The translations under genes were made by a program, and so were the position numbers. 64,000 nucleotides of DNA, from positions 146,533 to 210,532 of the forward strand of contig NIVC01000138.1 in the NCBI GenBank assembly GCA_002269645.1. Reading direction: 5' to 3'. Numbering within the stretch: position 1 is the first letter of the stretch; every line of letters begins with the position of its first letter. Below are positions 4,964-64,000 of this stretch, piece by piece. Below the pieces are notes generated by a model that was not told the DNA's origin, searched no databases, and worked only from the letters and a program-made list of their open reading frames with translations. Source of the DNA: Macrostomum lignano. Lineage: Eukaryota.

Positions 4964-16096
<11,133 letters not shown>

Positions 16097-23794: not shown

Positions 23795-24050
23795 TTAGGG
23801 TGCCCAGGTTAGGGTGCCCAGGTTAGGGTGCCCAGGTTAGGGTGCCCAGGTTAGGGTGCTCAGGTTAGGGTGCCCAGGTTAGGGTGCCCAGGTTAGGGTG
23901 CCCAGGTTAGGGTGCCCAGGTTAGGGTGCCCAGGTTAGGGTGCCCAGGTTAGGGTGCCCAGGTTAGGGTGCCCAGGTTAGGGTGCCCAGGTTAGGGTGCC
24001 CAGGTTAGGGTGCCCAGGTTAGGGTGCCCAGGTTAGGGTGCCCAGGTTAG
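23795..24050. repeat. Minisatellite, 14-bp unit TTAGGGTGCCCAGG, ~18 near-perfect copies
   Basis: Direct periodicity; each unit contains the TTAGGG hexamer. Confidence 0.97.
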
Positions 24051-32632: not shown

Positions 32633-33435
32633 TAGCGTCATTCTGCTTCAGTTGTGCATCTGTATGAGCTGGCAGTGGAACCCTATTGAGTATGTACAAT
32701 TGAAGCTACTGCTATAAACGTAAAATTTTAGTTAAAAAAGTAAATGTTACTAGCAAAATTAAAACAAGAAATTATACTAAAACTTTTTTGTTAAAATTTG
32801 AAAAAGTGTTGTCTTTTAAGGCTTTTCTCTAAATGAAATGTTTATGATAATTAAAATTATTAATTAATATTTTAATTATATCACAATGTTGCGCTTAACG
32901 ATATTTTATTATAACATATAATCTATCCTTTATCATTAGCATGCTTGTTAACATTAATATTCCCACTCCACGAATTAATAATCAATGATTTATTTACTTT
33001 TTTTTCGTTATTTCTCAGTTTTTTAATTTGAATATTAATAGTCAATTTAGCCACTATTAGTAGAACACAAACAAAATATCAAATTGAAATAAAAGACAAT
33101 CAAAACAGACAACAATGACGTGATTTTTCCACCTTTTCAATTGCTTTTCACCGAATTAGCTCTTTTGAAATGCTGGAGCCGTAATAGTTGTTCTATTTTT
33201 GTTTAATATGTAAAGACGGTTCTTTGCGATTGCTTTAAAAGAAATTAATAAAATTTCGTTTAAATTATTTGTGTCGAAATCACTGCAGCAATAATGAGAG
33301 TGAGGCTTGAATATATAATCGATTTATAAACAATTTGGATGATCAGGAGAAATATTTCCTAGTTTTAATTAATTGTATTTTCAGGCGATACTGAAATCGC
33401 TGACAGCTGATTTTCAATTTTGCTCTTTGCTCGAG

Positions 33436-34251
33436 ACTGAGGGGTGGGGGTTGTGCCAGCCACTGCGGGACTGAGGGGTGGGGTTTGTGCCAGCCACTGC
33501 GGGACTGAGGGGTGCGGTTTGTGCCAGCCACTGCGGGACTGAGGGGTGTGGGTTGTGCCAGCCACTGCGGGACTGAGGGGTGTGGGTTGTGCCAGCCACT
33601 GCGGGACTGAGGGGTGTGGGTTGTGCCAGCCACTGCGGGACTGAGGGGTGGGGGTTGTGCCAGCCACTGCGGGACTGAGGGGTGGGGTTGTGCCGGCCAC
33701 TGCGGGACTGAGGGGTGGGGGTTGTGCCAGCCACTGCGGGACTGAGGGGTGGGGTTTGTGCCAGCCACTGCGGGACTGAGGGGTGTGGGTTGTGCCAGCC
33801 ACTGCGGGACTGAGGGGTGCGGTTTGTGCCAGCCACTGCGGGACTGAGGGGTGTGGGTTGTGCCAGCCACTGCGGGACTGAGGGGTGGGGGTTGTGCCAG
33901 CCACTGCGGGACTGAGGGGTGGGGTTGTGCCGGCCACTGCGGGACTGAGGGATGGGGGTTGTGCCAGCCACTGCGGGACTGAGGGGTGGGGTTTGTGCCA
34001 GCCACTGCGGGACTGAGGGGTGGGGTTTGTGCCAGCCACTGCGGGACTGAGGGGTGTGGGTTGTGCCAGCCACTGCGGGACTGAGGGGTGTGGGTTGTGC
34101 CAGCCACTGCGGGACTGAGGGGTGGGGGTTGTGCCAGCCACTGCGGGACTGAGGGGTGGGGTTGTGCCAGCCACTGCGGGACTGAGGGGTGTGGGTTGTG
34201 CCGGCCACTGCGGGACTGAGGGGTGTGGGTTGTTCCGGCCACTGCGGGACT
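33436..34251. repeat. G-rich minisatellite, 33-34-bp unit (gggactgaggggtgggggttgtgccagccactgc), ~24 copies
   Basis: Direct periodicity. Confidence 0.97.
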
Positions 34252-35319
34252 GATAGTGCTATAATAGCTAGGACATTCGGCAGATCCGCCAAGCCAGCAG
34301 CAGAAAATCAGATAGCTTAGAGGCCTGTGTTTAGAACACAAGAGGCTGGTTTATCTTAACAGTGTCACCTATAGTATAGCAGTTTAAAAATCAAAGTAAC
34401 TAACACATATATTAAACAGGATTGCGAATTCAATGCTAGCCCATGCCAAAAGTCACTTTTTAACAGGCTTTTCAAAACACGAGAGACGAGGGTATTTTGT
34501 GTTTTGATAAAAATAAAAACATTGATTAAACCAATGCTACTCATTTGATTCAGACTCGATAGTAGTATACAAGTAAAAATTCGCCTAAAATTAATAGTAT
34601 TGTTTTAGATAAAATCATTTCGATAAAAAGAGACTATTATTGAACCAAAATACGCGAGAACAAAATGAGAACAGACGCAGAATGAACATGACGCTTGGGC
34701 CTCCCATTCACTTAGCTACTGGTTGGCGGCCGCAAAGCCAAGTCTTGTGCCATCCGCTAATTGCTATATTATTAGATTGTCACTAATAATTCCTCATGCA
34801 TATGTTGGCTTAACGGCCTCCGGATCAAACTCTGGGCTCTGCTGGCTGGGCATGGAGACATAAAAAACACAAACAAATGGCAAACAAATGTTTGTGGTCA
34901 AGTAAAAACACACATTATAACTAAACTGCTTGTACAGCAAAATATTTTTTTGCTTTTTTAAAAACGAAAAAAAACGAGTGAACACTGGCTGACTGCTCAG
35001 GTGTGTGTTAAGTCTTTTGCTAAATAAATAAATATTATTATATAACATATATATGTATGTATGCATATGAAAATGACCACGACAATTATGAACAAGTTGG
35101 TAAACAATATAACTATATATGTATTTATCATATTTGAAAATATAAGTGTCGGTATAATATATATATATATAAATATGCCTATGCACTCATGTAAAAACAG
35201 ATATAAGGTTTTTTGGTAAATCAGAGAGTGGGGCTGCGAGTTTAACAGACTGTCAACTGATCGCCTGGGAAGTTCAACTTTATTAGTCTGGAGAATTATA
35301 GTTCCATTTCCGAGAAATT

Positions 35320-41964: not shown

Positions 41965-44900
41965 ACGAAGTCGGGATGAAGGCGCCGTGAGTCTGAGCGC
42001 CGGGCACCTGGAACGGCGCCAACTGCTGATAGGAGGCGGCCGGCTGGTAGACTGGGATGCCGCTCTTGTTGTCCGCCACGGCAGGCCGCTTGCCGCCGTG
42101 CAGACCGGCGTAGGCTGCCGCCGTCGGCATGCACTGCGGGGGGACGGGGACCAAGGATCACGGATTAGAAGATTATGGATAAATTAGAGACACTGGATTA
42201 GTATATGATACGCTCGTGTAATCGGAAATCATCAACACAATTTATAGATCTGGGGGTGAAAATCGGGGATCGTGGATTAGGGATCAGGGACTGTGAATCA
42301 TGGATTAAGGATTAGGGATCAGGGACTGTGAATCATGGATTAAGGATTAGGGATCAGGGACTGTGGATCGTGGATTAAAGATTAGGGATCAGGGACTGTG
42401 GATCATGGATTAAAGATTAGGGATCAGGGACTGTGGATCATGGATTAAGGATAGGATTAGGGATCAGGGACTGTGAATCATGGATTAAGGATTAGGGATC
42501 AGGGACTGTGGATAATGGATTGAAGATTAGGGATCAGGGAATGTGGATCATGGATTAAGGATTAGGGATCAGGGACTGTGGATAATGGATTAAAGAATAA
42601 GGATCAGGGACTGTGGATCATGGATTAAGGATTAGGGATCAGGGACTGTGGATCATGGATTGAAGATTAGGGATCAGGGAATGTGGATCATGGATTGAAG
42701 ATTAGGGATCAGGGACTGTGGATCACGGATTAAGGATAGGATTAGGGATCAGGGACTGTGAATCATGGATTAAGGATTAGGGATCAGGGACTGTGGATCA
42801 TGGATTAAGGATTAGGGATCAGGGACTGTGGATCATGGATTGAAGATTAGGGATCAGGGAATGTGGATCATGGATTAAAGATTAGGGAATCAGGGACTGT
42901 GGATCATGGATTGAAGATTAGGGATCAGGGACTGTGGATCACGGATTAAGGATAGGATTAGGGATCAGGGACTGTGAATCATGGATTAAGGATTAGGGAT
43001 CAGGGACTGTGGATAATGGATTGAAGATTAGGGATCAGGGAATGTGGATCATGGATTAAAGATTAGGGAATCAGGGACTGTGGATCATGGATTACGAATT
43101 AGGGATCAGGACTGTGGATCATGGATTAAGGATTAGGGATCAGGGACTGTGAATCAAGGATTAAGGATTAGGGATCAGGGACTGTGGATCAAGGATTAAG
43201 GATTAGGGATCAGGGACTGTGGATCATGAATAAGGGATAATATTGGCTGTCTGAGTTGCTAATGCAGATAAAAAATGCAATTATTGTTATCTTTGCATTT
43301 ATTCATCGTTGATATTGCAATAGACTCGCTTGACTTTGACTGTGCGGTGCTGAGTGAGCTAAGCGACATTTAACAACGAAGGCGCGCAAAAGTTTCTAAC
43401 ATTTTCTGGAATCCATAGAGATTGCTAGCTTACTACAAAAAGGCACTGAAGGCAATCAAGCTAGCAGTGCTTGAATTGGTTTACTAGTGCGTGCGCGCGG
43501 GGAGATCCGCAGTGCACAAAGCGCGGGCTGACTGCTGTAGTTCGCTAAATCAGGGTACAAGCACTCAACAAAACACAAAGGAGAGATGACTAGTAGCTGT
43601 GACACGCGCTGCTGATGAGCAAGGCTTAGATGATGCTAGGAGAGGATGAACACGAGAGAGAGAGAGAGAGAGAGAGAAGCAGAGCGGAGTGCAGGCTTGA
43701 CTAGACTGATGCAGACAATCGGCATTGTCTTCCTTTAGTCAACCGCCCCCCGCCAACAACAGCCTATGCGACTCCAAAAACTCGCTTCAATAAAATATAT
43801 AACAAGTGGGGTTGGAGAGGCTTAAGGTAGGCCGGCTTAAGCCTAGCTTTTATTACTTTCTCGGGAAAAATTTGAAAATAGCGGCCCGGATTGGCACGGA
43901 TTTAGGATTTTATAGGGGAAAAATTTGTGCCAATTAAATGCCGACTATTGGTAATAAATTATACCTAAACCGAGCCTCGTTTCAAGATATTTCTTTTTTC
44001 TTTTTTAAGATACTTTCTGATAAATCTAAAGTCACCAACACTAGGCCTGCAGATGTACTGTGGCCTACTGCTGCGGTAGCCCCACCCTCCAGGAAAAATA
44101 GAGGTGGCGGAGGCTGCGGATCAAAGCCCCCCCCTCCTCAGTCACCTCCAAACCGGGCCAGCCGCCAATGCGTCCGTCTACCAGCCTTCGCCATGATAAA
44201 TTACTTTGAAAATCAATTTTCCCAAGGATATTGAAGGCAGGAAGAGACTGCAAGGGAAGAAAAGGGAGAGGGAGAAGTCTATAGGATAAACGGGAGCCAA
44301 GACTTTTTCTCCCAGACGACTTTGAGAAGCCATGGGGACTATTTCCCAAATGCCCAGGTCGGAGGGGGGGGTATGAGAAAGAGAAATCGGCGGGCTCCCC
44401 CGCTCCCACAATCGGCGATGAAGCTCGGGGGGGGGATGGTGAGGCCAATTTAATCAAGCCGCCGCCAGCTGAGAGAGGCGACTTTCCGAAAAGAATTCTA
44501 TGCGCCTTCTACACACTTTTAGTTTGGCTTCCGCGTGCCGCCAGCGGAGCCTGACGCAGATCGGGGTTTTGTTGCGCCCTGTCAGTTCCTTTTGGCCGCA
44601 TAAAATTAGTCGCTTAGCTACTCGTCTGTCTGGGCACCGGAGTCGACCCTACTACTTGCTATTCAGCTAGCCAATAGGGGCACGGCCCAATGCACACAGG
44701 GGACCCCAGACAGCGAGGCCCGCTCGCCATGCATATTTATAAATTTAATTAATTTATCCGGTCCCGTTGCATTCGAAACGATGCTGCCGCGTCGTAAAAA
44801 TGGCCTCAGTTAGTTGCTCCGATAGGAATATCTCGGATCTGTGTGCTTATCCCCGTCTCTGGTTCCCACAATCTCAACCTCCATCCACTCTCCTTTCTCT

Positions 44901-47900
44901 TTCGGAACAATTTTTCCTATTTTTCATATTCGGCTTGTCGGTCTGGGCCATCCGTTAATAGCAAAGTCTGGTCAGTTGCAGCGGCGGCATTAATGCGCGC
45001 GCAATTATGAATTATTAATTGTGTGCTTTATGACAGGGCTCGGTTGGCTCGAATCTGGCAATCGAGCCTCCTGCAACCGGGAGAGGATGTTAATACCGAC
45101 TGGGAAGGGGAGAGAACTCCCAGTTGGGAGATCTTGAAGGGATTGGGAAAAACCATGAAAAAGGCTATTGCACCCAGGAGGCAAAACGCTTCATGGAAGT
45201 CTGAATCCTCAGTGTCTGTAGTGGGATTTCACTGTCTGTACTTACAGCCGGATTTTACTGTCTGGCAAGCTCGTCTGTAGCTGGATTTATGGCATATTTT
45301 TTTATATCACTGCACAAGATAATTGGGGGACTGTTTGATGTCCGTCATTAGTCTGTGCTGTCTGTCTGCTTCACTGTCCGCTTATCAACTTGCCTCTCTG
45401 ATTGACCGATTTCTGACTGTCTGCCTGTCAAACCCAGACTGTCCTATCTGTTACTGTCTGTCTCTCAGCTTGTCTGTTTGTATGACACTGAGTGTCTGCC
45501 TTCTTTCCAGCCTGTCCGTCTGCATATGCCTCATTGTCTGTCTTCAGTCTAGCCTGTCCGTCTGCACATGCCTCATTGTCCGCCTTCCTAGCCTGCCCGT
45601 CTGCATATGCCTCATTGTCTGTCTTCCAGCCTGTCCATCTGCATATGCCTCATTGTCTGTCTTCAGTCTAGCCTGTCCATCTGCATATGCCTCATTTTCT
45701 GTCTTCCTTCCAGCCTGTCTGTCTGCATATGCCCCATTGTCTGTCTTCCTTTCAGCCTGTCCGTCTGTATATGCCTTAGTATCCGCCTTACTTTCAGCCT
45801 CTGCTCGTCTCTCCATCTGTCGATAAAGCGCCGACGTCTTGCCATATCGCGAAAGTAGCGAGGGAAAAGGACGCTTAGATCGCAATCGCTATCGGCTTTC
45901 ATTCAAAGTCTCAGTAGCTGTGCAGCCAGCCAATTTCATCCGTCCGCGTGCACAGCGGTTGCATATATTATGCTCGCCGATATAAAGATATTCAACATTT
46001 ATATCCATGTATGTATATTCCATTGAATTAACGCGACACAATGGAGCCACTAGTCATCTGGCTGCGCACACTGAACCGGCTGCGACGCCCCGAAGATGAG
46101 AGAAATAATGGGTAACACAGGCGACACAAGCTTTAAGCGGTCACAATGTAACCCCCCGGTGTTTGTTTTCCCTTCCCGCCACCAAAGTCAGCTGCTGCCG
46201 CGGCCTGGCCGCCGGCGATCTTTGCGTCGCTTCAGCTGCGGGTGTGGCGACCTCTTTCACAAATCCCACTTCGCGGCACGCGCTGGGGGCATAACAAAAA
46301 ACGGTTGCATTCCACGGGGAAGAATCTCCCCCTGCCGTTTTGCCTGGGCATCGAGATTTGCGGCATGACACTGCGCTGGGATGGCGGCCCAGAGGGAAAT
46401 AAAACAGAATAGACTCCCTTCGTGCTCTGCTGCGGCTTTTGCTTCTTGTGTCTGCTTTTCAATTGCTGCTGGCAATGAAGTCTGCCCGGGAGGGGTTATC
46501 AACCTCACTCCAATCTGTCCCTCTGTGCTTCCTTCAGTAGCAATTCGGTTGTGTTCAAAAGCAAAAAAGTTGATTTCCTTTCCACTGAAGCAAAGCGGCT
46601 GGCGACTGACAGCACCGGAAGGGTGGCAGTGTCCAAGGCGCTTCATAAAACCCTGACAGTAAACAGCACGATGCCAACAAAACTTTTTTTCACTGTCAAC
46701 ATGTTATCATTTATCTGGCCCTCGCTTTCATGCAATTAATCCATTATCACCACACTGCGGATGAGGAACCCTAAGGGTTCTTTAGAGTTCCTCAATTCAG
46801 CATGAAATTCTTTAATACATTGGGCTTCAAATTGCTTCAAAGGTTTGATTAAGTATAGAGAAGAAAAAAGGAAAACAAATTGATTCTATGTGGGAGAAAA
46901 ACATTTGTTTTCCTTTATCCACGGGATAGATTAGCAATCTGGGGAACAGCTTATTTTTGCCCCTTGCTTATTGTCGGTTGTCCGTCATCGCAACACTTAA
47001 TTATCGCACAGATCCGTGACGTCGGGTACCCAAGGACTACTTTAGTCGTCCTTGCGGGTACCGGCGCCCCGAAGGGGGGCACTAGATTGCTAGCCCATTC
47101 TATATCTCATCGTCGGGATAGATTAGCAATCCATTCTATATCTCATCGGCGGGATAGATTAGCAATCCATTCTATATCTCATCGGCGGGATAGATTAGCA
47201 ATCCATTCTATATCTCATCGGCGGGATAGATTAGCAATCCATTCTATATCTCATCGGCGGGATAGATTAGCAATCCATTCTATATCTCATCGGCGGGATA
47301 GATCAGCAATCTATTCCGGATTCAGCGGACCCTCTCCATCATAGATAAAATCACCCAGCAAATCCATTATTTTGAACTCATTCGCTGACTAGACTTTAGC
47401 AATCAGTTTCACTCCGTCATCCGGACTCATCAGTCCTACGAGCGTAGCACTATATACTTTTTTGCCTTCTTGGCTCACAAAGCCCAGTTATACAGCAGTC
47501 GATTCTTTAGCCACAGAGCGTCGCGCAGAAGGCCGCAGACTGTCGATAAATAACGCTGAGCGCTCAGCTATTGTTCGCATAATTTATCCCACCCTGCGCT
47601 GTTGTGCGGCGCTGGCGGGGTTGGCTTGGGAGCAATAATTAAGCAGCTGCCAAGGCCCCACCCCAGCCGCCGCCGCTGCCGCTTTTGGTCTAGAAAGCTG
47701 AGCAGCAATCGCTCTTTTAGGCCGGACGACAGTTTGGCCTAATCTATGGATGGGGGATCAGGCCGCTGTTGGTAGGGGGGGGGGGGTTGGGAGAGCGGAG
47801 ATCAGCTTAGGGATGAGTTACCCCGCTTTTCACGGGACTCCAGACAGCAGAGCCGTGCAGCCTTGACTTGGGAGGGGGTGGGGTGGCGCTTCTGTCTAGG

Positions 47901-50900
47901 ATCTCAATAAATCACCGCATTCTCATCCTGTTCTCCTGCTCTCTTCCTCCCTCTCAGCAATTCTCCTCTGTACTGAGCGGCCAAGCAAAATAGAGATAGA
48001 TATACTTGGGACAGGAGAGAGCGGGGGGCGACAGACAGACAGACAGACATTGCGGCATTGCGGCAAAAGAAGACTAGGCTTTGAAGCCGGTGCCGCAGCC
48101 CAAACTGCCGTACTCTTTTGTTCAACTCTTGAATTCAAAGGAGCCCAGACTCGCTTCTCAGGGTGGAAGGAAGGGACAGCAATATTTTCTCCCTTCAAGA
48201 GGCTTCCGATTCCGCTGATTATTGTCCAGCACCTCCGACTCGCCCCCCCCTTTAACCGGCTGAGAATTTACAGCGTCTTCTTTTTCAGAAAGAGAGGGAC
48301 AATTTCCTCTAGGGCATTTCTCCTCACCTTGGCTGCATCAGCAAATCTGTATGTCATTCGCAGCTTTGCCTCCATAATCAGCAGGCCAAGTGGACATCCA
48401 TTTCCAGCTAGGATTTTTTACGACAGCCGATGGGGCCATTTTTCAGGCTATAGATTTTTTTGGAAGCGAAAATTTATGACTGCGACAACCGCGACGCACG
48501 TGCGGCCCTCCCCGTAGCGCTCTGTACGACAGGTGATTTCCTGACTAAATAATAATAATAAAACTATCGATAATGCCCGTCCGTCTCCCTCCCAGATGAA
48601 GATTGAGGAGGCTGACTGAGGAGACAAGATTCCAGATTTCGAAGCCTAATAGGTGACAGTGCCAAATCAGCCGTTTGAAATCACCAGTCAGTATTAGCTA
48701 TAGCTAAGTAATAAATAATTGGACTAATTTAGCCGGTGCAAAAGAAGCAATAAAGCGCAATAAGCTTGAATCCGAAAAGCGAAGATAAGAAGCTAATAAG
48801 CGTAAATAGGTTAGTTAATGTAGAAAAACAGAGTCCGATAGGATTGAACAAAAAAATGAAGCCTGCACCCAAAGCGGCAAGGTAAAGCCAGCATGCTAAA
48901 AGGAGACTGACTAGAAAGATCTCGATAAATATTGAAGCATTGATGGCGCTCTCTATGTAATAATGGAAAATAGTGGCAGGCGCTCTAAATATGTACAAGG
49001 TAGGGCAGACTGGAGCAGCTTGGGATTAAGCTGGCCGCCGCTGCTGTAACTGCTGTCGCATACTGCGGCTGCTGCTGCTGCTGCTGGTTCAGCATCGGCA
49101 TAACAAAGGGCACGGCCAGTGCTGCCGCCGATGACTCATCACTGATTTGAAGCTGCTGCTGCTCAGCCATCAGCTTCCTCTTTTTAGCGACGCCAGCCAG
49201 CGACTGAGCATCTGACGGCGGCGGCGGTCGCAAGCCGGCAGCTGCGGCGGCGGCCGCGGCCGCTGCTTGGTGATGATAAGCCGCCGCAGCAGCAGCCGCA
49301 GCCGCCGCTGGGCCACCGTCAGGGCCGCCGCCATCACCGCCGTCGCCGGCAGTGGAAGAGGATGAGGAGGAGGCGAAGGCGGAGGCAAAGCCGGTGACGC
49401 CGCTGTGCGCAAAGCGGCTCTATAGCAGGGCAATGGCAGAGTAAAAAAAATTTGGAGCAAAGACGGTACAGGAGAGTCGCATGCGATGCTCAGTGCTTGC
49501 TGGGGGGGGGTTTAGATTTTGAAGCTGCTGCACGCAACAGAGACCAGACGCACTGCTTAGGTGTATTTTATGACTATTTTTGCCATTTAAATGTTTCTAT
49601 TATGAGCGTATTTGAGCTACTAAAGTCCAGCCTGAACGGTGGAAAGGTGAGTGCATTAACCTTTGATGCGCGTCTGATCTGTGCTGCCAAGGCGCATAGC
49701 TCGTACAGTAGCGGCGGTGCATGCGCTAATATTAATTATTAGTATTTAAAATGTAATATAAAATGTAATTATTAATAGTAAGCAAAGGAAAGGTCAGTAT
49801 AGCATTCAACGGGTCGCGCAGAAGCGGATTGTTTATACGACGACTTAAATTTGTTAGTAAAAGTTATTCAGTTAGTTTAAAAATTGTGCGAAAATAAACT
49901 AAATAAATCGCGATAATGTTAGTCTTATTCTTATTTTATTAAACGACCATACGTAGAAATGTAGAAGAAAGTTGTTTTACAGCTAATGTGTGGGCACGCC
50001 ATCCCATTCTTTGATTTTCAAGGCGATTTCCAAATCCTTCATCCCTTCTCTCACCTATCCAGTTAACTAATTTGAGCGCACTAGCTAGTTCCGCCTTTGA
50101 GCGCAGCAGCTCCATAGTGGCACCTGCTGCTCCCTTGCAGTGACTGCATAATTGCTCTAAGCTGTGCGGCCTTAATTTTAGCTAGCAGGAGGCACAAGGA
50201 GAGGAGTTGAATCCGCAGTCGCTGAGAGAGGCGAACAGCGCGGGTAGAAAATGATACGCTTGAGACGAATAGGCAGTTTCGCTGCCCGATAATAGGGACT
50301 ATTTATTATGGTTAAAGAGAATAGGGGGCTTTTTTTAGGCAAAACGAGATGCAGAAAGGGGGGACGCAAGGTCGGAGAGAGGGTGAGATCTCGGCTTTGT
50401 CCTCAAATTAGGCCTTCCCCATACCTGTGTATTTTGTTTCGGGGGCCTTCTCAGTCTCATCCTCCATCCCCCCCCCCAGCCTGTCATCTGAAGGGCTGAG
50501 CGAATTTTTTGCCGACTCTTTTGCGTGCTGCGCTGATGGAATAGGAGACTGAAAGGAAACGGAGCAAGCTAGAGTAGTGATAGGAAAAGGGTGCCGGAAG
50601 CAGACAGATCCGAGTCTACGAAGTTGCAGATGCCAGACGGCGCTTGTTGCATCCCAACAACAGCCAACCACCCCCGTTTTCCTCGTTTCGTGCCAGTTTA
50701 CCGATCACGAAGCCCTCCGCTCGTTGATCTGCTCGGGCTGCTCTGTGGAGCAGTTTAAACTTTGCTTTTTCCCGTCCTCATTAGTTAAATTCTCCTTTTG
50801 AGAAGCACAAATTCGTCCAATAATTATGTTTAAAAACAACAAGATACGAGTATGTGTCTTGATGCTTCAATAAATCTTGTTTCACAGTTCAGCGTGGAAG

Positions 50901-53900
50901 GCTGTTTGTTCTATAGTTCACCTTGTACTGGAAGGCTGTATGTTCTATAGTTCACCTTGTACTGGAAGGCCACCTGTTCCACAGTTCACCTTGTACTGGA
51001 AGGCTGCCTGTTCCACAGTTCAGCGTGTGCAGGAAGGCTGCCTATTCCACAGTTCACCTTGTACTGGAAGGCTGCCTGTTCCACAGTTCAGCGTGTACTG
51101 GAAGGCTGCCTGTTCCACAGTTCAGCGTGTACTGGAAGGCTGCCTGTTCCACAGTTCACCTTGTACTGGAAGGCTGCCTGTTCCACAGTTCAGCGTGTAC
51201 TGGAAGGCTGCCTGTTCCACAGTTCAGCGTGTGCAGGAAGGCTGCCTATTCCACAGTTCACCTTGTACTGGAAGGCTGCCTGTTCCACAGTTCAGCGTGT
51301 ACTGGAAGGCTGCCTGTTCCACAGTTCAGCGTGTACTGGAAGGCTGCCTGTTCCACAGTTCAGCGTGTACTGGAAGGCTGCCTGTTCCACAGTTCAGCGT
51401 GTACTGGAAGGCTGTATGTTCCACAGTTCAGCGTGTACTGGAAGGCTGCCTGTTCCACAGTTCACCTTGTACTGGAAGGCTGCCTGTTCCACAGTTCAGC
51501 GTGTACTGGAAGGCTGCCTGTTCCACAGTTCAGCGTGTACTGGAAGGCTGCCTGTTCCACAGTTCAGCGTGTACTGGAAGGCTGTATGTTCCACAGTTCA
51601 GTGTGTGCTGGAAGACTGTATGTTCCACAGTATGTTCCACAGTTCACCTTGTACTGGAAGGCTGCCTGTTCCACAGTTCAGCGTGTACTGGAGGGCAGCC
51701 CGATACACAGTTCAGGAGAGTATCGCGGTCCACATATCAACAAAAAGTTACAAGATTACGGTCATAAAATCTCTTAGCCGTAAAAATCAGTATATCAGCG
51801 ACCTTCCAATAACTCCTTGTCACTTGAAAACAAACGGTTTCCAGTGTAAAGCCATGCAAATATATCCAAAAAGGAGTTGCAGCCTATAGCAGGGGATTTC
51901 GCTAAGCCATCTGGAATGGGGCACGTGGGGTAGAACCGGAGTGAAAAACAAGCATTCCAGGATGCAGAAAGTGAGCCGCCAGCCGGAAAGCGTGATTGAT
52001 GGTCACTTCAATAGCGAGAGGACCCGAGTGTCTATAATATAGCTGGCTTTTTGAAACCCTAAAACGCGCCTAGCCCCGATCGGATGACTAAAATCTGCGG
52101 CCACTAGTCCTGTCCGTCGTTGTTTTTACTTTTGCCTTTGTGCATTAAAAGCAGTTTTAGAACGGGAAATCGGAAAGCAAAAGCCACCAGCAGGGATAAA
52201 TTTGTCCATGTCTAATTCGTTCACCTATCGCTGAAGTGCCCGTATTTTTCTCGCATAAAAGTAGAAGAGCGATTAGGCAATGATGGTTTTAACGCTTGGG
52301 ATATAACAAATCCGTGAACCCCGCCATCCTCTGATGCATTCTACTTTGAATGCAAATCCCCCGGGGAGTCGATCCACTCCCAGCTCGGTGGGCAACAACA
52401 ATACTGGCGGGATGTTCCACTGTTGGGGAGCGGCGATGGGAATCGCGATCCCGGTTAAAATAGTAGTGGGTCCGAGACCATCAGGCTGTAACAACACGGG
52501 GGTGTCTGTGTGCGCGGATCTTTTACCAACTCGGCACAGGCTACGGAGAGCGAATTTAGAGGGCCAGCTAGGAAGGAAAGCAGAAAAAATGGTTTCCAGA
52601 AATCGGATGGGCAAGCAAGCCACCTCATCCTCCGCTGGGAGCCCAACAAAAAGAAGAAAGCTGTAGAGGAACTACGAAGTTGATGAAAAGTTCGGGTTCT
52701 CTCTCCGGATGCTTTTCAGCTTTGCCCCCTTCGCTTTCTTTCAGGGTTTACTTGCTTTTGCTGAGAGCGACTAAGTCATTAATCACTGGGTTAGGGAGCG
52801 GGCCTGAGACTCGGAGCCGTGCCACGCCGGACCCGCAACCACAAGACAAATGGGGGTGGAACAGGATGGCACCGAGGCCTGGCGGGCAAGGGCCGCCTCT
52901 CTCCCCACTCTTTCGCATAATTAGCTTCTCTCCCAAGGACCAGATCCCCCTATTCGTTTCTTTGCATTCCGCTCCTATTTTTGCATCCGCATAGAAACTT
53001 TGCTTGTGGCTGTTTGGCCCGCCCGTCCCAGCCTCCGCCGTCTGCCCCTCTCCAGCTGCAGATGCAGTCAGAATTCGTACCGCACGGCACCCGGCCTGTC
53101 AAAGTGCCCCCGACTGACCGACTGCGCCTCTCCCGGAATTGGGGAGGGTAGGAAGAGACGAAGAATGAGGCCAACGAAGGGAGATTCCAACCGTTCGCTG
53201 CTCGGGTGGTTGCAAGTACCAACTTTGCCTTAGAAATGAGAGAAGGATAAGGTTTTGCCTCGGTAGCTACTCCCTCTTCCCGGATTCCTTCCACATAGCC
53301 CTCGTCATTTGTCATTGGGCGCCTTGGGGCTTTGCAGAATCCGGGAGGCGGGCGCATTCAGCAACCAACTGTTACCCCCATTTGAGAGTGTCTGCTGCCG
53401 CGAATGCATCAACAGCCGATGCTTGACGAGAAGGGAAGGGGGAAAACAGATTTACCTCTCATCTGCCTTGTTTGCCGTCTTTTGCTTGCTCCTATTACGC
53501 TAGGACTTCCAGGTGACTCACTTACAGCTTCTTACTGGCCAGGGGGCATTAGCCACATCTTGATTACACCAAAGGAGCCCGAAATTCTTTCCCGCTTACT
53601 CTCGTCTTACACGCTTCGTGCGACCATCTGAGTGTCTCGCCAATGGTGACTCACGCGAGCATAGTCGGCGGGGCAGCATTTCTGCCTTGCTGCGTCGGAG
53701 TGCGGCGCAGCGCAGCTGATCCGAGGGATTTTTTTCTGCGAACCGACCGACAGCCAGCAAGTCAGGCCAAACCAAGCGTCTCCCTCCCCCTCTCCCTATC
53801 TGCCGTGACTCACGTTTGGCAAGATAAGACAGCATCGCTTGTATTCGAAATAGCTAGCTATAGGCATGGCACGTGTGGCTTGGCTGCACGCAGCAATCTT

Positions 53901-56900
53901 TAATCCCAATGTGCACGACGCAATGCGCTGTTTGGGGTCTGCGCATGGCGGATAGGGTCAGGGAATAGGCACGGCCCGGACCACAACAACCAGTTGGTGG
54001 TCCCGCGGCCTGAAATTCGATACAGACGGAGAGGCAATCGTGCGCCAAGAGCTAACTTTCAAAGACTTCTGCTCGATTTTTGGCAAATTCCTTCCTTATA
54101 GTAGATAAACAAGTAGTCCGTGAGTAATCAATTCCAGCTATCTGCATCGGCGGAGAAGCATGCCTGTTTATCGTACTACATATCAGAAAATGTACGACAG
54201 CAACTGTACCTTTTGTGTACTGTTGCATTAAAGCGATACAACAGGCAGTTTATATAACGCCGTACAACTTGCATAATTCTTATAGTCAAGCAGTATAAGA
54301 CCTAAGGCCTGTACTTAGAATTGCTTGTCCAAAAACGAAAACTAGACTGGGCCGCATTTGCCCGCAGTTCCACAGCATAAAACAACATTTTATTGGCCCA
54401 AAATAAACCCCCCGCCATACACAAACAATCATCATGGCCTTTCTCTTGTGCTCACACCGACACTCGTTCACTGCAATTATTCACACTAGCGGCTTCTAAA
54501 TTTGCGCAATAGAAACATTTTTATGCACCAACCGCCCTGTTGGTCAAGTGCGCAAGGATTATGCTAATTTGCAGCGCAATTCTAGCCCGGAACGCGGGAG
54601 AGCGAATACAAAGAAAGGATATATTGAAGACAGAGCAGGCTCTAATTAGACTTATTTGACTCAACCTTCCAGCCTTCGTACATGTAGGGCGTCGTGGACC
54701 AATGTGTCCATTGACGGCTAAATGACACGTACTCCGAAAGTATTCTCCTCTCATAATATGTTGAGCAGCAGCAGCAAGCACGATGAGCCAATTTTAGCGG
54801 TTCCGCATTCGCGGTATCGAGTGTCATCGCGCGGAAAGATGGGCCCCCAACCAGCCAGCCCATTTTCGGTCGCTGCTGGCACATTGCGGTTAAATATATG
54901 CGGTCCCGGCGGATGGGATGATGGATGCTGCAGGCCGCATCAGTGCTATCGCGCAGTCGGCCTTTTCTATTCCCTATCTATTTCCCCGATGCCAATGGCT
55001 TAAAAAGCTCGAGCCTTGTCGCATTGCCCGGCTTTAGATGCATTTTGCCATCTTTTCTGCCTCTCTATCTCTCTCTGCGCTACTCTGAAATCTAGAATAC
55101 TACATGCGACAGCGGCTCGGGAGCCAAGCCAGCAAGGCCATAGAGATACACTGCCGGTGCGCGTTCCTCCTCATCTGCTGCCTCCCAGCGTTCGATTCTT
55201 GCGCCCTCGATTCTCCGTCCGCGCGCATATTTCTCTCTCCAAATTTAATATGCGTGCCATTACAATTTTCATTGCGATTGCGAGCCAAAATTTGCATACC
55301 GCCCCCGCCACCGCCAAACCCTGCTGCACGGCGCCCTGCGCAATAGTCAGAAACGCGTGCAATGCCGCAATGCCAGTGCGCCCGTTGCGAGGCTGGCTTG
55401 AAAAGAAGAAGCATTGAAAGAAAACGAGAAGAGGGGGGCATCGATAAAGTAAAAGACGAGAGAAACTCCCCGACTATTAGGATGGCATTTGAACGAAACT
55501 AAAAACCCAATTTTTTTTAAAAACTGGAATGCTGGGCTTGTAATAATCACGCATAAAAGCATCAGATAGAATCAAAGATTGCTACTGCTGTACTGGAAGA
55601 TCAAATTTCAACGAATTTAGCCAATTCTCGTCTTCTCTTTAAATTGCGTATTTTTTATCTTGAACTATTTCCGAGCGATTTTTTATTTTGTTTGAAAAAC
55701 TTGTGCCATTTTTATTAGGCAGATTATTAGCAGTTAATATTTCTTTATCTGAGGTATTATAGTAGAGCTTCCATGGTTTGAGCGGAGTGCATTGGCGTGT
55801 GAGAATCTGTCTCTCACTCTAAAATTCTATTTCCATTGCATTTACTTGGGTAATTTAGGCAGACACCAGCGTGGCATTGGATGGCGTGCAGAAGCTGGGA
55901 CTTTGGCAAACGGTTGACAGACACCCGTTGTTTCTTATAGCGTGACCAGCACGGATTCGCAAACACACTGACAGGCCACTCGTTCACACAAAGTGTCAGT
56001 CAACGCTATAGCAGGCTGAATGCTCCTTTCCTCGCTGCTGCGCCCTCTGTTGCCTCTAACTCTACCAGCCCTTTTCTATCGCAATTGGAATTCTTACCAA
56101 TGGGATTATGAATTATTCCGCTACGCCAGACCCCGCGCGCAAACGGCAGAGAGGAGAAAATCCCCACCGATGGACGGACTGTGCCAGTTGCAAAAAATAT
56201 GCCACAGAAAAAATCGTGCAAGCCATACAGTAGCTGGATAGCCACAGCGATAACCAACCACGGCGCCGGTCCCCGGCAGACGACAAAGTTTCAACAACAA
56301 AAAACAATAGCAAAAACAGAATCAGCTGTGGCTGTAGCAACAGTACACGATACGCATGTACGAATGAAATAAAAAAGGACAGGCGCTTAAAGACCAGGCG
56401 AATATCGCATTCCACAGATAAAGTGGGATAAACACGGTGGCAGGCATAGCGATTCGTTTCCCAACCGCTTCCCTCTGCTGACAGCGCGAGGCCTCTCCCC
56501 TCTCCTAGTGTCCGTGTAGTGACCTATTGCGCCTGGTCATGTGCAAAAACAAACTGTAAGGTCACTGCCAGACATGTAGACCCGAAGTTGTAAATTTGAT
56601 AGCAACCCGCCTTCAACCAGGCATTTTCAGACGCCCATTCCACCTTTAACGTGTCGCCTCCCAATAGAATCTTATCCATAAGGCAGGAGTGCCGTTGTCG
56701 TAGTCTGAACAAACTGACAATTCCTTTGCCAACCAGATCCCACCTACGTCCACTTCCCCCAAAATCCTACTGGAGTTGGGAAGAAACACGCGCATTATGC
56801 GAAGCAGCATGATCATATCGCCATTTCTTACCCATAGCTACTCACTAAACGGCGCCAACACGGTGCTGGGCAGAATAAAAGAGAAAATTGCGAGTGAGAG

Positions 56901-59900
56901 AAGAGTGAAATAATCTGACTGGCTTAGGGGCGCCTTGTGAAGGGGTCACCGCGCGTCAGGCGACCTGCAATGCAGCATTTTCCCCTTTTACCTCTCTCTC
57001 CCGCGCTTTCGGGCTCACCCGCACTTCACAACCGGAGAACTTGGGGGGGGGGGTATCCTCGGATATCGCGGGTCTACTGAAGAGTTACACAGACACTCGG
57101 CAGTTTACTCCAGTTAGATCCCCCTTGCATAGCTACTCAGCTCGCACACCTGGCGCCTTCAGCACACCCGAGAGCAGAATTAGAGGCTTAACAGACAGAA
57201 GAACCGGAGGAAGGAAGAAGGGCCAGAGCAAAAACTCGATCTATGTCTATAGTAGCGGCTAGCTAGTCTCGCATATAATGCATTGTTTCGTCTCTTTATT
57301 ATATTGCGCGTTCCTGACATTTGGCAAGCTTGATTCATACAGCTTGACTAGGACCACACGGCAAGCGGATTAGGTCTCACTAGATAGCTAAACTATAATA
57401 CCGAACTCCAAGTTATTCAACTTTGTAGCAGTGCATAGCTAGGATACACAATTTGTCCTCAATGGGTTAATAGCGACTCTAGGAATTGCTCTGTATCTCT
57501 CTGACTAACTAGTTACAGCTATGACTCTTATATACCCAGCAATATGACTGCATTTTGTAGAGGCGAGATAACAGCTCTCAGTCTGTGCGCTTGTGCGGCA
57601 TAGCAATTTTACCGCACCCACACACGCACAAACATATTACAGTTGAGTCTGGCTTCAGCTTATCTATTCGATTGCGAGTGGGTTTTTTTAGAGAGGCTTT
57701 CGGTTTGTTTTACTGCCGAGGTTCCCAGATTGCTGCTGCTGCGGATAATGGCCGGGAGGTAAGGGGGCGCTGCAGAGGGGAGTCGAACTGCAGACTTGCG
57801 CGGTATCTATCAACCAGTTCACTGGTTGTATTTCGACGAATGACCGACCCCTCGGTGTGAAGTCATTTTTATTGCCTTCTTACGAATTCGCTATCTTGTG
57901 TGTACCGAATGTGAGCAGCACCCAAAAATCCCCCCGCCACTCCCAGATTTCCTTTGCTCTTATCGATGAGCAGAAATAATCATAATAAATAATACTAAAA
58001 TACAATATATTGATGAAAAAAGTAATAAAAAGGAAGGAATGGGAAATGGATAGAGGGGAGTCATGGAGGGGTCATAGATTCATGTAGGGAATCATTGAGT
58101 CATGAAGAAGATTATAGTCATGGAGGGGGTTATAAAGTCATGGAGGGGTTATAAATTCATGGGGATTATAGATTCATGGAGGGGGTTATAGATTGAGGAG
58201 GGAATAAGGAATTAAGGAGGGAATCATTGAATCATGAAAAAGATTATAGAGTCATGGAGGGGGTATAGAGTCATGAAGGGGGTTATAATCATGGAGGGAA
58301 TCATAGTCATAGTCATAGAAAGTCTCTTTGAGTCAGAGGGTCAGTGAGACTCAGATGACATGCAGAACAGAGCCTTTGAAAGACATAAAACGCATTTGAC
58401 CTTGAAAGCACACAGTTATCAAGAGCTAAACTATGATTATTTAGTGGCATTGACTAGTAAGGTACAATTAAAGGGCAAATCAGCCACCACCTCCCCCCCA
58501 AAAATGGTACTTTGCCAATTGTGAAAAAAAACGGTCGCCATTAATTAAAAGCCGCTATTGGCCAATTGCTACAAATAAACGCTTAGAAAGCGGCGCTTTG
58601 CATAAACTGCACATACACTGAAGCGGACGAAGAGGCAGAGATGAAGGGCAGAGAGAGAGAGATGAAGGGGAGAGAGATGAAGGGGAAGAGAGAGATGAGG
58701 GTTAAAATTGCATACTGCCGTAAAATTTGATTTATTCATGAGAGCTAGCTCATGGCCAACCTCAACTTGCATAGCGCAAGAGAAAGCTGCGACTGCTCCA
58801 AAATGTACCCCCCCACCTAACTTGTGACCCGCTTTCGGCTGAGTACCCGGTATAAGAGCCCACTCACGACTCTGTTCCCTTTAGCTTCTCTCCCTGCCTC
58901 TGCTGCTCCATCTGTTTGCGGCGCGTTCGCTTTTGCGGCGCGTCAGTCGCGCGCTTTCTAAACGTAAAAAGAGCATCGGCATTGGATTTTGAGCTAGCCG
59001 GTGTGAGCACTGCTAAGGCATTCAGAGTAGCTAACTGGCCTAACCCTATATTCAAGGATGCTCATTCTCTGCCAAAGCCTTACTGATGTGAGAGCACGAG
59101 TCTAGAGTCTCAAGTCGTATATTACGGTCTCTGACACTGAAATGTCACCCTGTGCTGGGTGTCTCTGACACTGAAATCTCACCCTCTGCTGGGTGTCTCT
59201 GACACTGAAATCTCACCCTGTGCTGGGCGTCTCTGACACTGAAATCTCACCCTGTGCTGGGTGTCTCTGACACTGAAATCTCACCCTGTGCTGGGTGTCT
59301 CTGACACTGAAATCTCACCCTGTGCTGGGTGTCTCTGACACTGAAATCTCACCCTGCGCTGGGTGTCTGACACTAAAATCTCACCCTGTGCTGGGCGTCT
59401 TTGACACTGAAATCTCACTCTGTGCTGGGCGTCTCTGACACTGAAATCTCACCCGTGCTGGGCGTCTCATCTCATTTAGGCGCCCCAAACGAGCTCGAAC
59501 TTGCTTTGGGATTGGGAATATTATTGATTTGGAAATCGCACACCAGATCCCGGCACCCATTATTCCAATCCGACAATCAGCAAATCCTTCATTCCCCGTA
59601 AATGCTATCTAGACGCTAACCTCGGGAGGACTCATTCCGGGATTGCAATTCCAATAGGAAAATTTACATGCAAATTCCGGTCAAACCCCCATTACTGGTA
59701 TCAGCATTTTTTCTAGGTTCAGCCGGAAAAATCATTGGGGTAAAAATTGGCCCTAAGCCTGATGGATGGCGGGCCCGCATAGCGGTCTATACAAATTTGT
59801 TAATAATAGGGAGTAAGTATAGTATTAATAATATATATAATACATGTAAGTAGTTCTGACGCACATATTTAGTTATAAGTTGATAGCTCGTAAATCTATC

Positions 59901-60789
59901 CTACGAAAGGCAAAAGTTATAGCAACTTACGCTCATATGCAGCAAAGCGGCACGTACAAAGCGAATATAAAAAGTATAGATATTTAATTAGTCATCCTAC
60001 ATGTAACTAAATTAAGCGAATTGCAAGCGGCGGTTATTAAATATATAAATAATACAGTCATGATTATCCAGCCAATTAAATTTGCAGGCTAAAAACGCAG
60101 ATCTAGGTAATTTGGCAACAACATTTATCGTTAGAAATGGATTCTATTATAGCTGCTCAATTCAATAATCTGAGGGGATTTATTAGCTCCAGTCAACCCA
60201 AACCGCAATACCCATACGGCCATACTAAGCTATCGCTTAAAAAACTGATAAAAAGTAAGCAATTAAAAATCACAAATTAAAACCATTAGCCAGCAGAGCT
60301 AGTCAAGCGGGGCTGGTTTAGCAAACAAACTAGACTCCCTTTAAAAGCTTGAAACTTGCGTTGTGCGGCGGTGAAGCAATCGTTGCTGTTTTAGATAAGT
60401 CTCAAAACTAATTAGTGATCCCCATAGCTGCTCTAGGTGAACACCAGGATTTGAAAACTCACATCTCGATTGTCAAGCTTCATGCCTTGGCCGGCGCTGC
60501 CTCCTCCGCTGTTGCCGCCACCGCCGCCAGCTCCGTTGATTCCGTTCATGCTCTGCTGCTGCTGCTGCTGTTGCTGATGTTGTTGCTGATGTTGTTGCTG
60601 CTGCTGATGCTGTTGCAGGGACGCCGTCTGAGACTGCGGCGGCGGCGGCGGCGGGGGTGGCGGCGGCCCTCCGCTAAGAAGAGCGTCGGCTGCGGCGGCG
60701 GACATGACTGGCAGGCCGCCGGTGCCCAGGTAGCCGGTGTAGGTCGGCGCCGAGGTGACCGCGGCCGCCATGCCGCTGTTGATTAGCGG
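41965..60789 (-). CDS. mbl: Muscleblind-like (MBNL/mbl) gene, partial. Exons 60789-60463, 49419-48997, 42133-41965; 5' zinc-finger exons presumably outside the window; last exon not located
   Basis: Exon 42133-41965 encodes GKRPAVADNKSGIPVYQP...YQQL...AFIPTS, the C-terminal signature I recognise from invertebrate Muscleblind. Exon 60789-60463 resembles the linker exon (P...YLG...AAAA...KL..RD). Exon 49419-48997 has RFAH, poly-Ala and KKRKL. Phases 0-0-0 join in frame. The donor at 48996 (gtacat) is weak. Confidence 0.75.
42268..43235. repeat. Minisatellite, ~35-bp unit (ggattagggatcagggactgtggatcatggattaa), ~27 copies, mbl intron
   Basis: Direct periodicity; each unit contains TTAGGG and TCAGGG. 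Confidence 0.96.
45490..45790. repeat. Degenerate ~41-45-bp minisatellite (gcctgtccgtctgcatatgcctcattgtctgtcttc...), ~7 copies
   Basis: Recurrent ctgcatatgcc.cattgtc. Confidence 0.85.
47095..47310. repeat. Minisatellite, 36-bp unit (gggatagattagcaatccattctatatctcatcggc), ~6 copies
   Basis: Direct periodicity; produces the HRRDRLAIHSIS repeat ORF. Confidence 0.95.
50877..51690. repeat. Minisatellite, 34-bp unit (ggaaggctgcctgttccacagttcagcgtgtact), ~24 copies with two interleaved variants
   Basis: Direct periodicity. Confidence 0.97.
58060..58320. repeat. Highly degenerate ~20-bp repeat (gtcatggagggggttataga-like)
   Basis: Recurrent tcatgga/gggg.ttata. Confidence 0.7.
59128..59465. repeat. 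Minisatellite, 34-bp unit (gtctctgacactgaaatctcaccctgtgctgggt), ~10 copies, mbl intron
   Basis: Direct periodicity. Confidence 0.95.
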
Positions 60790-60827
60790 CTGCAAATTGT
60801 GGGATGGGGGAAGGCATAGTTGCATTT

Positions 60828-61040
60828 CAAATCCCAGTTCCTACTGGTCAAATCCCAGTTCCTACTGGTAAAATCCCAGTTCCTACTGGTCAAATCCCAG
60901 TTCCTACTGGTAAAATCCCAGATCCTACTGGTCAAATCCCAGTTCCTACTAGTCAAATCCCAGTTCCGTCTCGTCAAATCCCAGTTCCTACTGATCACAT
61001 CCCAGTTCCTACTGGTCAAATCCCAGTTCCTATTGATCAA
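60828..61040. repeat. Minisatellite, 21-bp unit (caaatcccagttcctactggt), ~10 copies, ~40 bp upstream of the mbl exon acceptor at 60790
   Basis: Direct periodicity. Confidence 0.95.
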
Positions 61041-64000
61041 ATCGCAATTCTCTAATCCTTTAAAGTTATGACTGTAAGTTAAATAAACAAACACTAAAGC
61101 CTCCGATCCGATGATTAGTTAAAACTTATTAATATGCACAATTTAACAAACTGCGCCTCATCAAACTGGACCTGCATGGATTGCACCTGGCCCAGTAATC
61201 TACGCGGACTGGCTATATGGACATTGCGCGCACACACACACACGGAGGCTACCCAGCCTCTTTGAGCTGAAACCCTAGCACACACCAATAGCCCAAGATC
61301 GAAGCCGGGACAAGAGGAGAGGCGGGCTCAGGTTGACGAAGATTTCGGTAGAGATGAAGCAAATATGTTAGCGGACGGGAGAAGAACGCCAGGAGAGCAA
61401 AGTGGAGAAAAGCAGCTAAGCCTGAGAAGGGATGATGAAGGGGGTTTTCAAAACAAGAGGCAGCAGTAGAGACAGTCAGTGCTGCTCACTCAGCATCCTC
61501 CCCAAACCTCCATCATCTCTCTCTCTCGTTCTCCGTCAATCCTTTGTGAGCAAAGTCACTCAGCTCTATCCTGTAGCTATCTGAGTCCGCTGTGTGTGAG
61601 CAGCTGCTTTATGTAGATACATATTTATTTGTCTCCTTATTTATATCTACCCTTGTACAATATCTAGCTACTAATAGACTCTGATTTGGACTGTTTAATC
61701 CTTTAATCCGGAAGACTTAGGACTTTGCAGCTCTTTCGCACATGTGGACGAATAAAATGGGACACCACACAGCAGAAACTAAATGAGATAAAGCGCAACA
61801 AGAGACGCTGAGAAGCAACAAAGGAAACCATGGCTACTCTGCCTAAGGGATTAAATCCATCTAAATCGAATCCTTGTTCCACTTTTAACAGTATGAAAAC
61901 GAAGAAATTGAATCGATAAAGAGATTGCGAGGCGGATGGAGCAGGATACTCAGGTAGGAGAGAGTGAAGCTTATCAGCCCCTCTGCCTGGAGGCACAAAA
62001 CTGCAAATTTAATTAACTAAAATCTGGGTACTCATTTCTCAATATCGCTGACATTCTCGCCTCCTGTATTTCCTGTTTTGCTGTCCCATCGGGAGATAGA
62101 TAAATGTCTTTCAGCTGACTCAGTTTGACTCACTATGGAATCATACCTAACAAAATATGCGATAATACCAGCGACGAATGACTCATAGGTCACAGGTCGA
62201 CATTCACCTCCTACAAAAGGATTTTTCTTATTTGCCGCCAGCTTTGCCTTCGTTTGCGATTTACTAAAAGACGAAAATGGCATCGGCAGTGAAAAATGAC
62301 GCTTTAGGATCAAATCCGGCATTAACGGGAGCGGAGATTGGGATGTCATTTTTGGGGGGGGGGTTACATATTCGGCATTTTCAGGCAATATAGCTTCAAG
62401 TACCGAACTGTCGATAGCTGAGAAGCAGTTGAGTAGGTGACGTCAGTGTTTTAAGGAGTGAGTGAAGCCGGGCCAAGGAGGAGTGAAGTCAACCTCCCCT
62501 CCTCATCCCAGGGAAGGAGAGACGAAACCTAGCCCTCCCCCCAACCACAGTTTCTTTGAACTGCTGAATGAATTTATTTCGCTATCTCTCTGTCTGCCCC
62601 ATCATGCAGCCCAAGCCAGCCTCCTCCCCCTACCCCAGTCCACAGTCCAGACCAGGCAGGCCAGCAGAGCAGGCTCAAAATCCAAGCCCCCCCCCAGTAG
62701 TGTGCTATGTTTATGCCGGCGCGAGATCGACGCCGCCGCCCAGAACTCTAGCAACAAATCTAATTGGGTTTACTAGCTGGGCCCCGCAATGCAATTATGC
62801 AGAGAGCGCGAGATGGCTGCTGGGGTGAGAAGGGGAGTCGGGATGGTAAGAGAGCTGGGAAAGAGGAAGAGACGGAGTGGAAAAACGAGTGTCAGTGTGG
62901 GCGAGTTTGTAGCGAGAAAAAAATGGGGGTAGGTTAGTCGATTTGAAACTGAGATATCGTTAAGGGAGCCCCGTTGGATCAAAACGCAGTCGGCCAATCT
63001 CTATCTGCATCTCCTCTTAATATCCAGCGGCGCCCCCCCCTTGGGCGGCCTTTTTCGCAATTGAATTTGAACGCGACTCAGTTTTTTCCTGTGACAAACA
63101 AAGCTCGAGAGTTGAGGTTTGAGATAGGGCTTGAGTTGAGTTGGGATGGGGCAAACAGGAAAGCGAGATGATGCGCCAACTAATAAATAGCCGCCTTTTA
63201 TCTCGGGATGACTCGGATTCGGGATTGAGCAGGGAAATGGATGCTGCATCCAGCTTCCTGAGTTGAACACGGAAGTTAAACAGGATTAGTATAGTGTAGA
63301 TTTTTACGATGCAAAGCTGATATTTCATTTTTCGACAATCTATCTAAGCATACACAAGTTTATTTAGAGACAGGTTTAATAATTAGGAAATTGTGCCAAG
63401 CAGACAGACAGAGAAGGCTAGTGTTTAAAACTGATTTTTAGACGAGAGTTTAATACGACTAATTTAATCAGTTTTTGAAGCTGTATGAACCTTCTCCGTA
63501 CCGACCGTACGTTAGAGAAAACCGATCTTACATGCCTTCCCAGGCCTAATTGTTGATCCGTTGGTTGATTTAAGCGCGTACACAATGTTATATCCATCTA
63601 TACTCTATCAGTGATCAAGTTAAGACCAAGTCCCGCCAATACTACATGTACAAGTATTGGGGGTGTGGGGCCTGTGGGGCTCTGTCTGAGTTAGTAAAAA
63701 TCCAGGGTAGGCTTGTAAAATTTTAGGCAAAGCGCCGTTTAGGAATACCAGCCTGAAAATAAGAAGCTTAACTAACACAGATAATGGTAAACTAAAGTGG
63801 TTGTTACTCGTGTATGGGCTACGGAGGGTTTTAAAAGCGAGCAATAAAAATCCAGCGCCCTCTTTTAACGATCGTGATAAGGAACGATTTTATTTGTAGT
63901 AAATGATAAAATATATATACTCGCCCACAGTACTAGATTAATAATATCATTACAATGAAAGTATTATTAGTTAACCTTGTTTATCCGGTTTATTCAGGGC

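Follow-up and report, generated by a model that had tools for sequence, protein, structure and literature searches.

Layout of the minus-strand gene

On the minus strand of the 64,000-nucleotide (nt) stretch of DNA analysed here (contig NIVC01000138.1; the window, whose positions are used as coordinates throughout) lies what exon alignments identify as the 3′ portion of a muscleblind (Mbl/MBNL) gene. The DNA is of eukaryotic type, has a GC content of about 45% and abounds in minisatellites; the gene is represented in it by three blocks (Table 1): a linker exon (e1), an exon carrying a KRPA motif (the KRPA exon) and, between them, a candidate low-complexity exon (e2). All three have a GC content of 0.63-0.65 and a third-position GC (GC3) of 0.65-0.75 (GC 0.63 and GC3 0.70 for e1, where the background is about 0.47), against a background of about 0.45-0.5. 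The features described in the first-pass annotation, which was made from the letters alone, are all present where it had placed them on this strand, including a Met codon at 60771.

Table 1. Features of the minus-strand muscleblind-type gene, in the order of transcription
Feature	Position	Strand	Remarks
Linker exon, e1	60789-60463	minus	equivalent of MBNL1 exon 3; phase 0 at both ends
Intron e1-e2	60462-49420	minus	11 kb; minisatellites, no zinc-finger exon
e2, putative optional low-complexity exon	49419-48997 to proposed donor; 48985 including stop	minus
Interval e2-KRPA exon	48996-42134	minus	no finger exon
KRPA exon	42133-41965	minus	equivalent of MBNL1 exon 6; phase 0 start, phase 1 end

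Exon e1 is bounded by a ttgcag/CCG acceptor and a GAT/gtgagt donor (the slash marks the exon boundary) and translates as PLINSGMAAAVTSAPTYTGYLG...PPPPPPPPPP...polyQ/H...GQGMKLDNRD; from its start it reads PLINSGM...YTGYLG..., or in a longer spelling PLINSGMAAAVTSAPTYTGYLGTGGLPVMSAAAADALLSGGP(10)...polyQ/H...GQGMKLDNRD. The KRPA exon runs from a cccgcag/TGC acceptor to an ACTTCGT/gtgagt donor (..TCGT/gtgagt), encoding CMPTAAAYAGLHGGKRPAVADNKSGIPVYQPAASYQQLAPFQVPGAQTHGAFIPTS plus one extra base. The three blocks are mutually phase-compatible (0/0), which upholds the frame of the phase-0 join from 60463 to 49419 proposed in the first-pass annotation, whereas the junction itself stays at the level of a prediction.

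Relation to Macrostomum lignano muscleblinds

The hallmark of muscleblind proteins is an N-terminal tandem pair of Cys-Cys-Cys-His (CCCH) zinc fingers (CX7CX6CX3H and CX7CX4-6CX3H) that follows an LEV box. A HMMER scan of 1.84 billion representative sequences with the spliced e1+e2+KRPA translation returned seven matches, six of them low-complexity noise and one real: Macrostomum lignano PAA79040.1 (P0002; hypothetical protein BOX15_Mlig007431g1), which carries the Pfam domain zf-CCCH_10 and whose N terminus matches the structure of MBNL1 fingers 1 and 2 (5u6h) in one single stretch with E=1.8e-33. When P0002 is compared with the window by tblastn, its linker exon pairs with e1 from the first residue of both (E=6e-8) and its KRPA exon aligns over the whole length with 42133-41966 (61% identity, E=2e-12). 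The splice junctions fall at identical positions in the window and in the M. lignano gene (...GAT/gtgag, ..cag/TGC and ACTTCGT/gt.ag.). These alignments and shared junctions argue that the gene whose 3′ exons lie in the window is a genuine muscleblind, and, its nearest database relative being a macrostomid flatworm, the source is probably macrostomid-like; they also bear out the earlier assignment of e1 as the linker exon and of the KRPA exon as the equivalent of MBNL1 exon 6, and the refuting outcome that the first-pass annotation had allowed for, a gene that is not a muscleblind, did not materialise.

Similarity to the human protein is much looser. With a human MBNL1 query, tblastn against the window aligns the KRPA exon to human residues 281-325 (KRPALEKTNG...YQQ) with E=0.37 and finds e1 with E=1.1, the likeness of e1 to human exon 3 amounting to an initial P-x..., the YLG motif and a terminal K-L-x-x-D-R. 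Word-indexed protein searches with the full spliced query and with a query trimmed of low complexity gave no match, low-complexity words having filled the candidate list; searched alone, the KRPA exon shared three 5-mers with no protein. Our literature search found no paper on a Macrostomum muscleblind.

Three gene copies of M. lignano were compared with the window (L001-L003; proteins PAA79040.1, PAA82042.1 and PAA82014.1). P0002 has a single finger pair: its linker, like that of its cluster mates, ends ...SSFKLDCSDRD and runs straight into CLPTSGFPGGKRAAVADAKSGIPVYQP..., the linker exon being spliced straight to the KRPA exon in the annotated products. Across the three loci both human MBNL1 and a hidden Markov model (HMM) of the finger pair match the finger 1-2 exons only; we found no finger exon in the linker-KRPA introns (7.3-8.5 kb, containing minisatellites) and no e2-like sequence anywhere in the three copies. 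Opposite-strand HMM matches in these introns, at 7 bits, were judged to be chance, and the only likeness to e2 was CAG/GCN low complexity in a neighbouring gene. The window locus and its relative thus both lack a second pair, and e2 occurs in the window alone. Worms also have one-pair muscleblinds.

The window gene and its M. lignano counterparts have in common an ADALLS-polyPro motif, KLD..DRD at the linker end, and GAFIPTS followed by a phase-1 donor. They differ in that the M. lignano linker lacks the long polyQ/H and polyG runs of e1, and in that the linker and KRPA exons are separated by 7-8 kb there and by 18 kb in the window. Between the window and an M. lignano locus, blastn and tblastx find conservation in the KRPA exon and in the polyPro part of e1 alone; the flanks yield minisatellite matches only, and the M. 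lignano terminal exon has no match in the window. In M. lignano the exon preceding the linker exon lies 7 kb upstream of it. The M. lignano models also diverge C-terminally after GAFIPTS, P0002 continuing with WTGDLFQEASCPTLTWV and a second model, P0011, with YNI (L001, 26011 onward), a difference that points to alternative 3′ ends in this relative. Like the window, the M. lignano muscleblind loci are rich in minisatellites.

Absence of the second finger pair

The second finger pair is absent from the window locus. A regular expression for Cx6-9Cx4-6Cx3H, run over all six frames of the window, returned two spurious matches, both far away; the human MBNL1 tblastn search detected no CCCH finger; and the finger-pair HMM, a small profile built from three finger-pair sequences, found none in the six frames of the whole window, its best score being 9 bits. 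Over 42134-60462, on either strand, all three types of search came back empty for a finger 3-4 exon, in agreement with the first-pass annotation, which by eye had seen no such exon on the minus strand of the 11-kb intron and whose proposed tblastn comparison for fingers 3 and 4 now yields no finger match in the window. With no CCCH finger in the window at all, fingers 1 and 2 must also lie outside it, the 5′ part of the gene being placed beyond 64000.

Two candidate finger segments were considered and rejected as chance matches. The first, at 43371-43309 on the minus strand (KCRLAHSAPHSQ / KCRLAHSAPHSQSQASLLQYQ), scores at chance level (E=1.9) in a short AT-rich frame with nothing finger-like upstream. 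The second, at 57762-57800 on the plus strand (RGRCRGESNCRLA; E=2.5, 5 bits with the HMM), lies on the wrong strand, has Arg in place of the His and is not followed by a finger 4. It lies within a plus-strand frame, 57690-57800 (GREVRGRCRGESNCRLARY, E 2.5-4), and thus in the very intron expected to house an exon for fingers 3-4.

The linker nevertheless still ends in K-L-x-x-D-R, the motif that elsewhere precedes finger 3, and from this motif it is reasonable to infer that an ancestor had a finger 3-4 exon after the linker. Here, as in M. lignano, this exon seems to be lost completely, with nothing to tie e2 to that loss.

The low-complexity block e2

Between the two conserved exons, e2 is most likely a real, lineage-specific coding exon, to judge from its reading frame and codon usage, and would encode a disordered Ser/Gly/Ala/Gln segment with a KKRK cluster. 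Its acceptor, ctatag/AGC behind a T8-rich tract, is good. The translation, SRFAHSGVTGFASAFASSSSSSTAGDGGDGGGPDGGP-A10-YHHQ-A10-GLRPPPPSDAQSLAGVAKKRKLMAEQQQ...SLPYL, starts SRFAHSGVTG and contains Ser/Gly runs, the A10-YHHQ-A10 tract, KKRKL and polyQ. One frame is open for 144 codons (GC 0.65), whereas the other two contain three and six stops. The 39 Ala codons are spread over GCG, GCC, GCT and GCA, and the variation within the two Ala10 runs, the Ser run and the Gly-rich segment is essentially restricted to third codon positions, as expected if the amino-acid sequence is kept.

The 3′ boundary is less clear. The proposed donor, CTT/gtacat after 48997, is poor: a crude consensus matrix gives it less than 2 bits, whereas both conserved donors do better (8.1 and 6.8 bits). 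Inside e2, no good donor in phase 0 was found. Reading through this donor adds VHI before a stop that ends the frame at 48987-48985, so that e2 could be an alternative terminal exon; no AATAAA or ATTAAA was found within 1 kb past the stop, which leaves the terminal-exon variant without canonical polyadenylation-signal support. As an exon, e2 would serve as either an optional cassette or an alternative 3′-terminal exon whose product would end ...SLPYLVHI.

The reading that we lean towards, with moderate confidence, is an ordinary one-pair muscleblind in which e2 is a lineage-specific exon and not a finger relic. Several points weigh against it. The finger exons lie outside the window, and the single pair is read from the M. 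lignano relative and not from the window gene; the e1-e2 and e2-KRPA junctions are both predicted; the M. lignano gene may be an ortholog or a paralog, no synteny with its flanks being detectable; and the lack of e2 in M. lignano, coupled with its weak donor, means that e2 could be a non-exonic, GC-rich repeat island.

This last alternative, in which an island of imperfect trinucleotide repeats occupies an 18-kb intron and the gene product consists of e1 joined to the KRPA exon, is unlikely in our estimate. In its favour, besides the poor donor and the M. lignano models that pass straight from linker to KRPA exon, parts of e2 are CTG/GCC/CGG arrays of period 3, and repeat-derived open frames abound across the window. 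Such an island would not readily account for a single frame that stays fully open while the others are interrupted, for Ala, Ser and Gly runs that vary almost only at third positions and use all four Ala codons, for non-repetitive stretches such as GLRPPPPSDAQSLAGVAKKRKLMAEQQQLQISDESSAAALAVPFVMPMLN, or for an exon-like composition matching that of e1 and the KRPA exon behind a strong acceptor.

The first-pass annotation had instead read e2 as a former finger 3-4 exon whose Cys and His ligands mutated away and were replaced by low complexity, with RFAH, the Ala tract and the basic cluster surviving as a scar. We regard this as improbable, and the notion of a domain erased into a scar as unsupported by the sequence comparisons. 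In its favour, e2 stands at the place of MBNL1 exons 4-5, between the linker and the exon 6 equivalent (PMC4176163), directly after the K-L-x-x-D-R end that precedes finger 3 in vertebrates, and SRFAHS differs from CRFAHP at its first codon by a single base (AGC for TGC). When e2 is shuffled, a finger 4-mer falls within the first ten residues in 0.8% of trials, so that RFAH right after the linker is mildly unlikely by chance and counts against the reading that we prefer. The same shuffles, however, contain a 4-mer from any of the three finger-pair sequences somewhere in 11% of trials, and one from human fingers 3-4 alone in 7%; the placement of RFAH is somewhat notable, but the motif was chosen post hoc and does not clearly exceed chance. 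Resemblance to the fingers stops at these four residues: aligned locally with human fingers 3-4, e2 scores no higher than its own shuffles do (p=0.22), and adding the human Ala-rich tail, which aligns the A10-YHHQ-A10 tract loosely with human AAQYQVNQAAAAQAAA, gives a poly-Ala-driven p=0.06, the Ala and basic tracts of e2 being generic low complexity. Among the top 25 matches of the finger-pair HMM e2 does not appear, its score being negligible. In frame upstream of RFAH stand a polypyrimidine tract and a stop, not CREFQRG.C, and e2, which has one Cys and three His in 141 residues, is unable to bind zinc as CCCH fingers do. Neither second-pair fingers nor a counterpart of e2 occur in the three M. 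lignano copies; a loss shared with M. lignano, if there was one, left nothing comparable in them.

Were e2 nevertheless descended from a finger exon, it would be an instructive case of domain-to-disorder erosion, an RNA-binding domain worn down in place to a disordered Ala/Ser/Gly/Gln module with a basic cluster, having lost every zinc ligand but remained an exon, within a conserved splicing regulator, and M. lignano, as the sister lineage, would have removed the finger exon outright.

That e2 belongs to a different gene nested on the same strand of the muscleblind intron is very improbable: strand, order and phase are what link e2 to e1, and nothing supports a nested gene directly, whereas the stop directly upstream of the frame and a first Met only at residue 84 mean that e2 needs an upstream coding exon, and 49420-60462 holds no other GC-rich exon-like open frame on the minus strand.

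Comparison with known muscleblinds and predicted product

A single finger pair is the usual and long-known state of invertebrate muscleblinds (PMC3315501, PMC4978528), and the locus fits this picture; the result has little meaning beyond annotation. In Drosophila melanogaster mbl the second pair is encoded by one cassette exon that is usually skipped, one-pair isoforms predominate, and insects and vertebrates share intron positions (PMC3315501). The window gene, as proposed, would resemble fly mbl in that one-pair products there arise by joining the linker exon to downstream exons (Irion 2012, PMC3315501), and in the polyA/polyQ-rich C-terminal exons and multiple alternative 3′ ends of the fly gene (PMC3315501). 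It differs in two respects: fly mbl keeps an intact single exon for the second pair (cassette exon 5), whereas the window locus has none, and the fly linker sits in exon 3, which also encodes the end of finger 2. In planarians, mbnl-1 encodes two finger pairs, and three further genes, called mbnl-like, encode one (PMC4978528); in Schmidtea mediterranea these are mbnl-like-1, -2 and -3, with the single pair that is proposed here (Solana 2016, PMC4978528). The conserved linker and exon-6-like exon of the window would fit a canonical-type gene that lost its second pair.

In vertebrate MBNL1 the order is linker (exon 3), exon 4, exon 5 and exon 6 (Konieczny 2014, PMC4176163), and the same order is kept here. 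Exon e1 shares with MBNL1 the intron position at its start (P-M/L...), the YLG motif and the K-L-x-x-D-R end, and the KRPA...YQQ exon bears a weak resemblance to exon 6. Against this, exon 4 with fingers 3 and 4 is missing, e2 lacks the Cys/His spacing, and the similarity to the human protein is weak (E=0.4-1). A bipartite nuclear localization signal of MBNL1 is made up of exon 5 and a basic motif of exon 6, and much of the splicing activity resides in exons 3 and 6 (PMC4176163).

As in M. lignano, the main product of the window gene would be a one-pair protein that joins e1 in phase 0 to the KRPA exon with no exon in between, its first finger pair being supplied by exons upstream, beyond 64000. 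Finger pairs of the muscleblind family bind YGCY RNA. The one-pair product may likewise bind YGCY through fingers 1-2 and regulate splicing with its linker and exon-6 regions. Where included, e2 would insert a disordered Ala/Ser/Gly/Gln segment with its KKRK cluster about 70 residues before KRPA, and might act as a nuclear-localization or self-association module; it would then be analogous in function to alternative exon 5 of MBNL1 and not a remnant of fingers 3-4. If expressed, e2 would be a modest instance of an alternative exon that is lineage-specific, disordered and possibly equipped with a nuclear localization signal, in a conserved splicing factor. What the analysis adds is a second muscleblind locus of macrostomid type in which the linker and an exon-6-like exon persist without one for fingers 3-4.

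A finger-less isoform starting at Met 60771, also put forward in the first-pass annotation, finds no backing in the relative, where the aligned position of the M. lignano exon is Leu. The region proposed as its internal promoter contains a minisatellite of about 21-bp units on the minus strand (about 60826-61060; aggaactgggatttgaccagt, about 11 copies) whose near end lies some 35 bp upstream of the acceptor of e1.

Other features of the window

Minisatellites are very dense in the window, where they account for more than 20 arrays with units of 10-60 bp in up to 116 copies, and many of them give long spurious open frames in more than one frame; examples are 7297-8453, 12672-15559, 25400-26444, 33435-34253, 42274-43235 and 50895-51715. 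A perfect (TTAG)78 array occupies 9016-9326, and an 18-copy array of a 14-bp unit (TTAGGGTGCCCAGG) with a TTAGGG telomere-type hexamer inside it occupies 23795-24050.

Downstream of the muscleblind gene there are evidently further genes. Exon-like frames on the plus strand at 5952-6290, 8267-8995, 15653-16096, 18790-19335 and 19755-20480 include a long coiled-coil segment, a Q/P-rich frame and a Cys-rich frame (...CSDCCPEYYEHAIWYQEE...CQACQENVC); a sequence search of the PDB with two of the window's other open frames gave no match. An open frame at 2223-2540 on the plus strand has, by eye, a C-terminal motif of Tc1/mariner-type transposases (HPPYSPDLALCNF...) and is probably a transposon remnant. 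At 28224-28547 on the plus strand, probably continuing to about 31100, lies an alpha-carbonic-anhydrase exon (WGYDKGDGPSAWPDLY...), which matches the structures of human CA7, CA3 and CA2 with E of about 1e-8.

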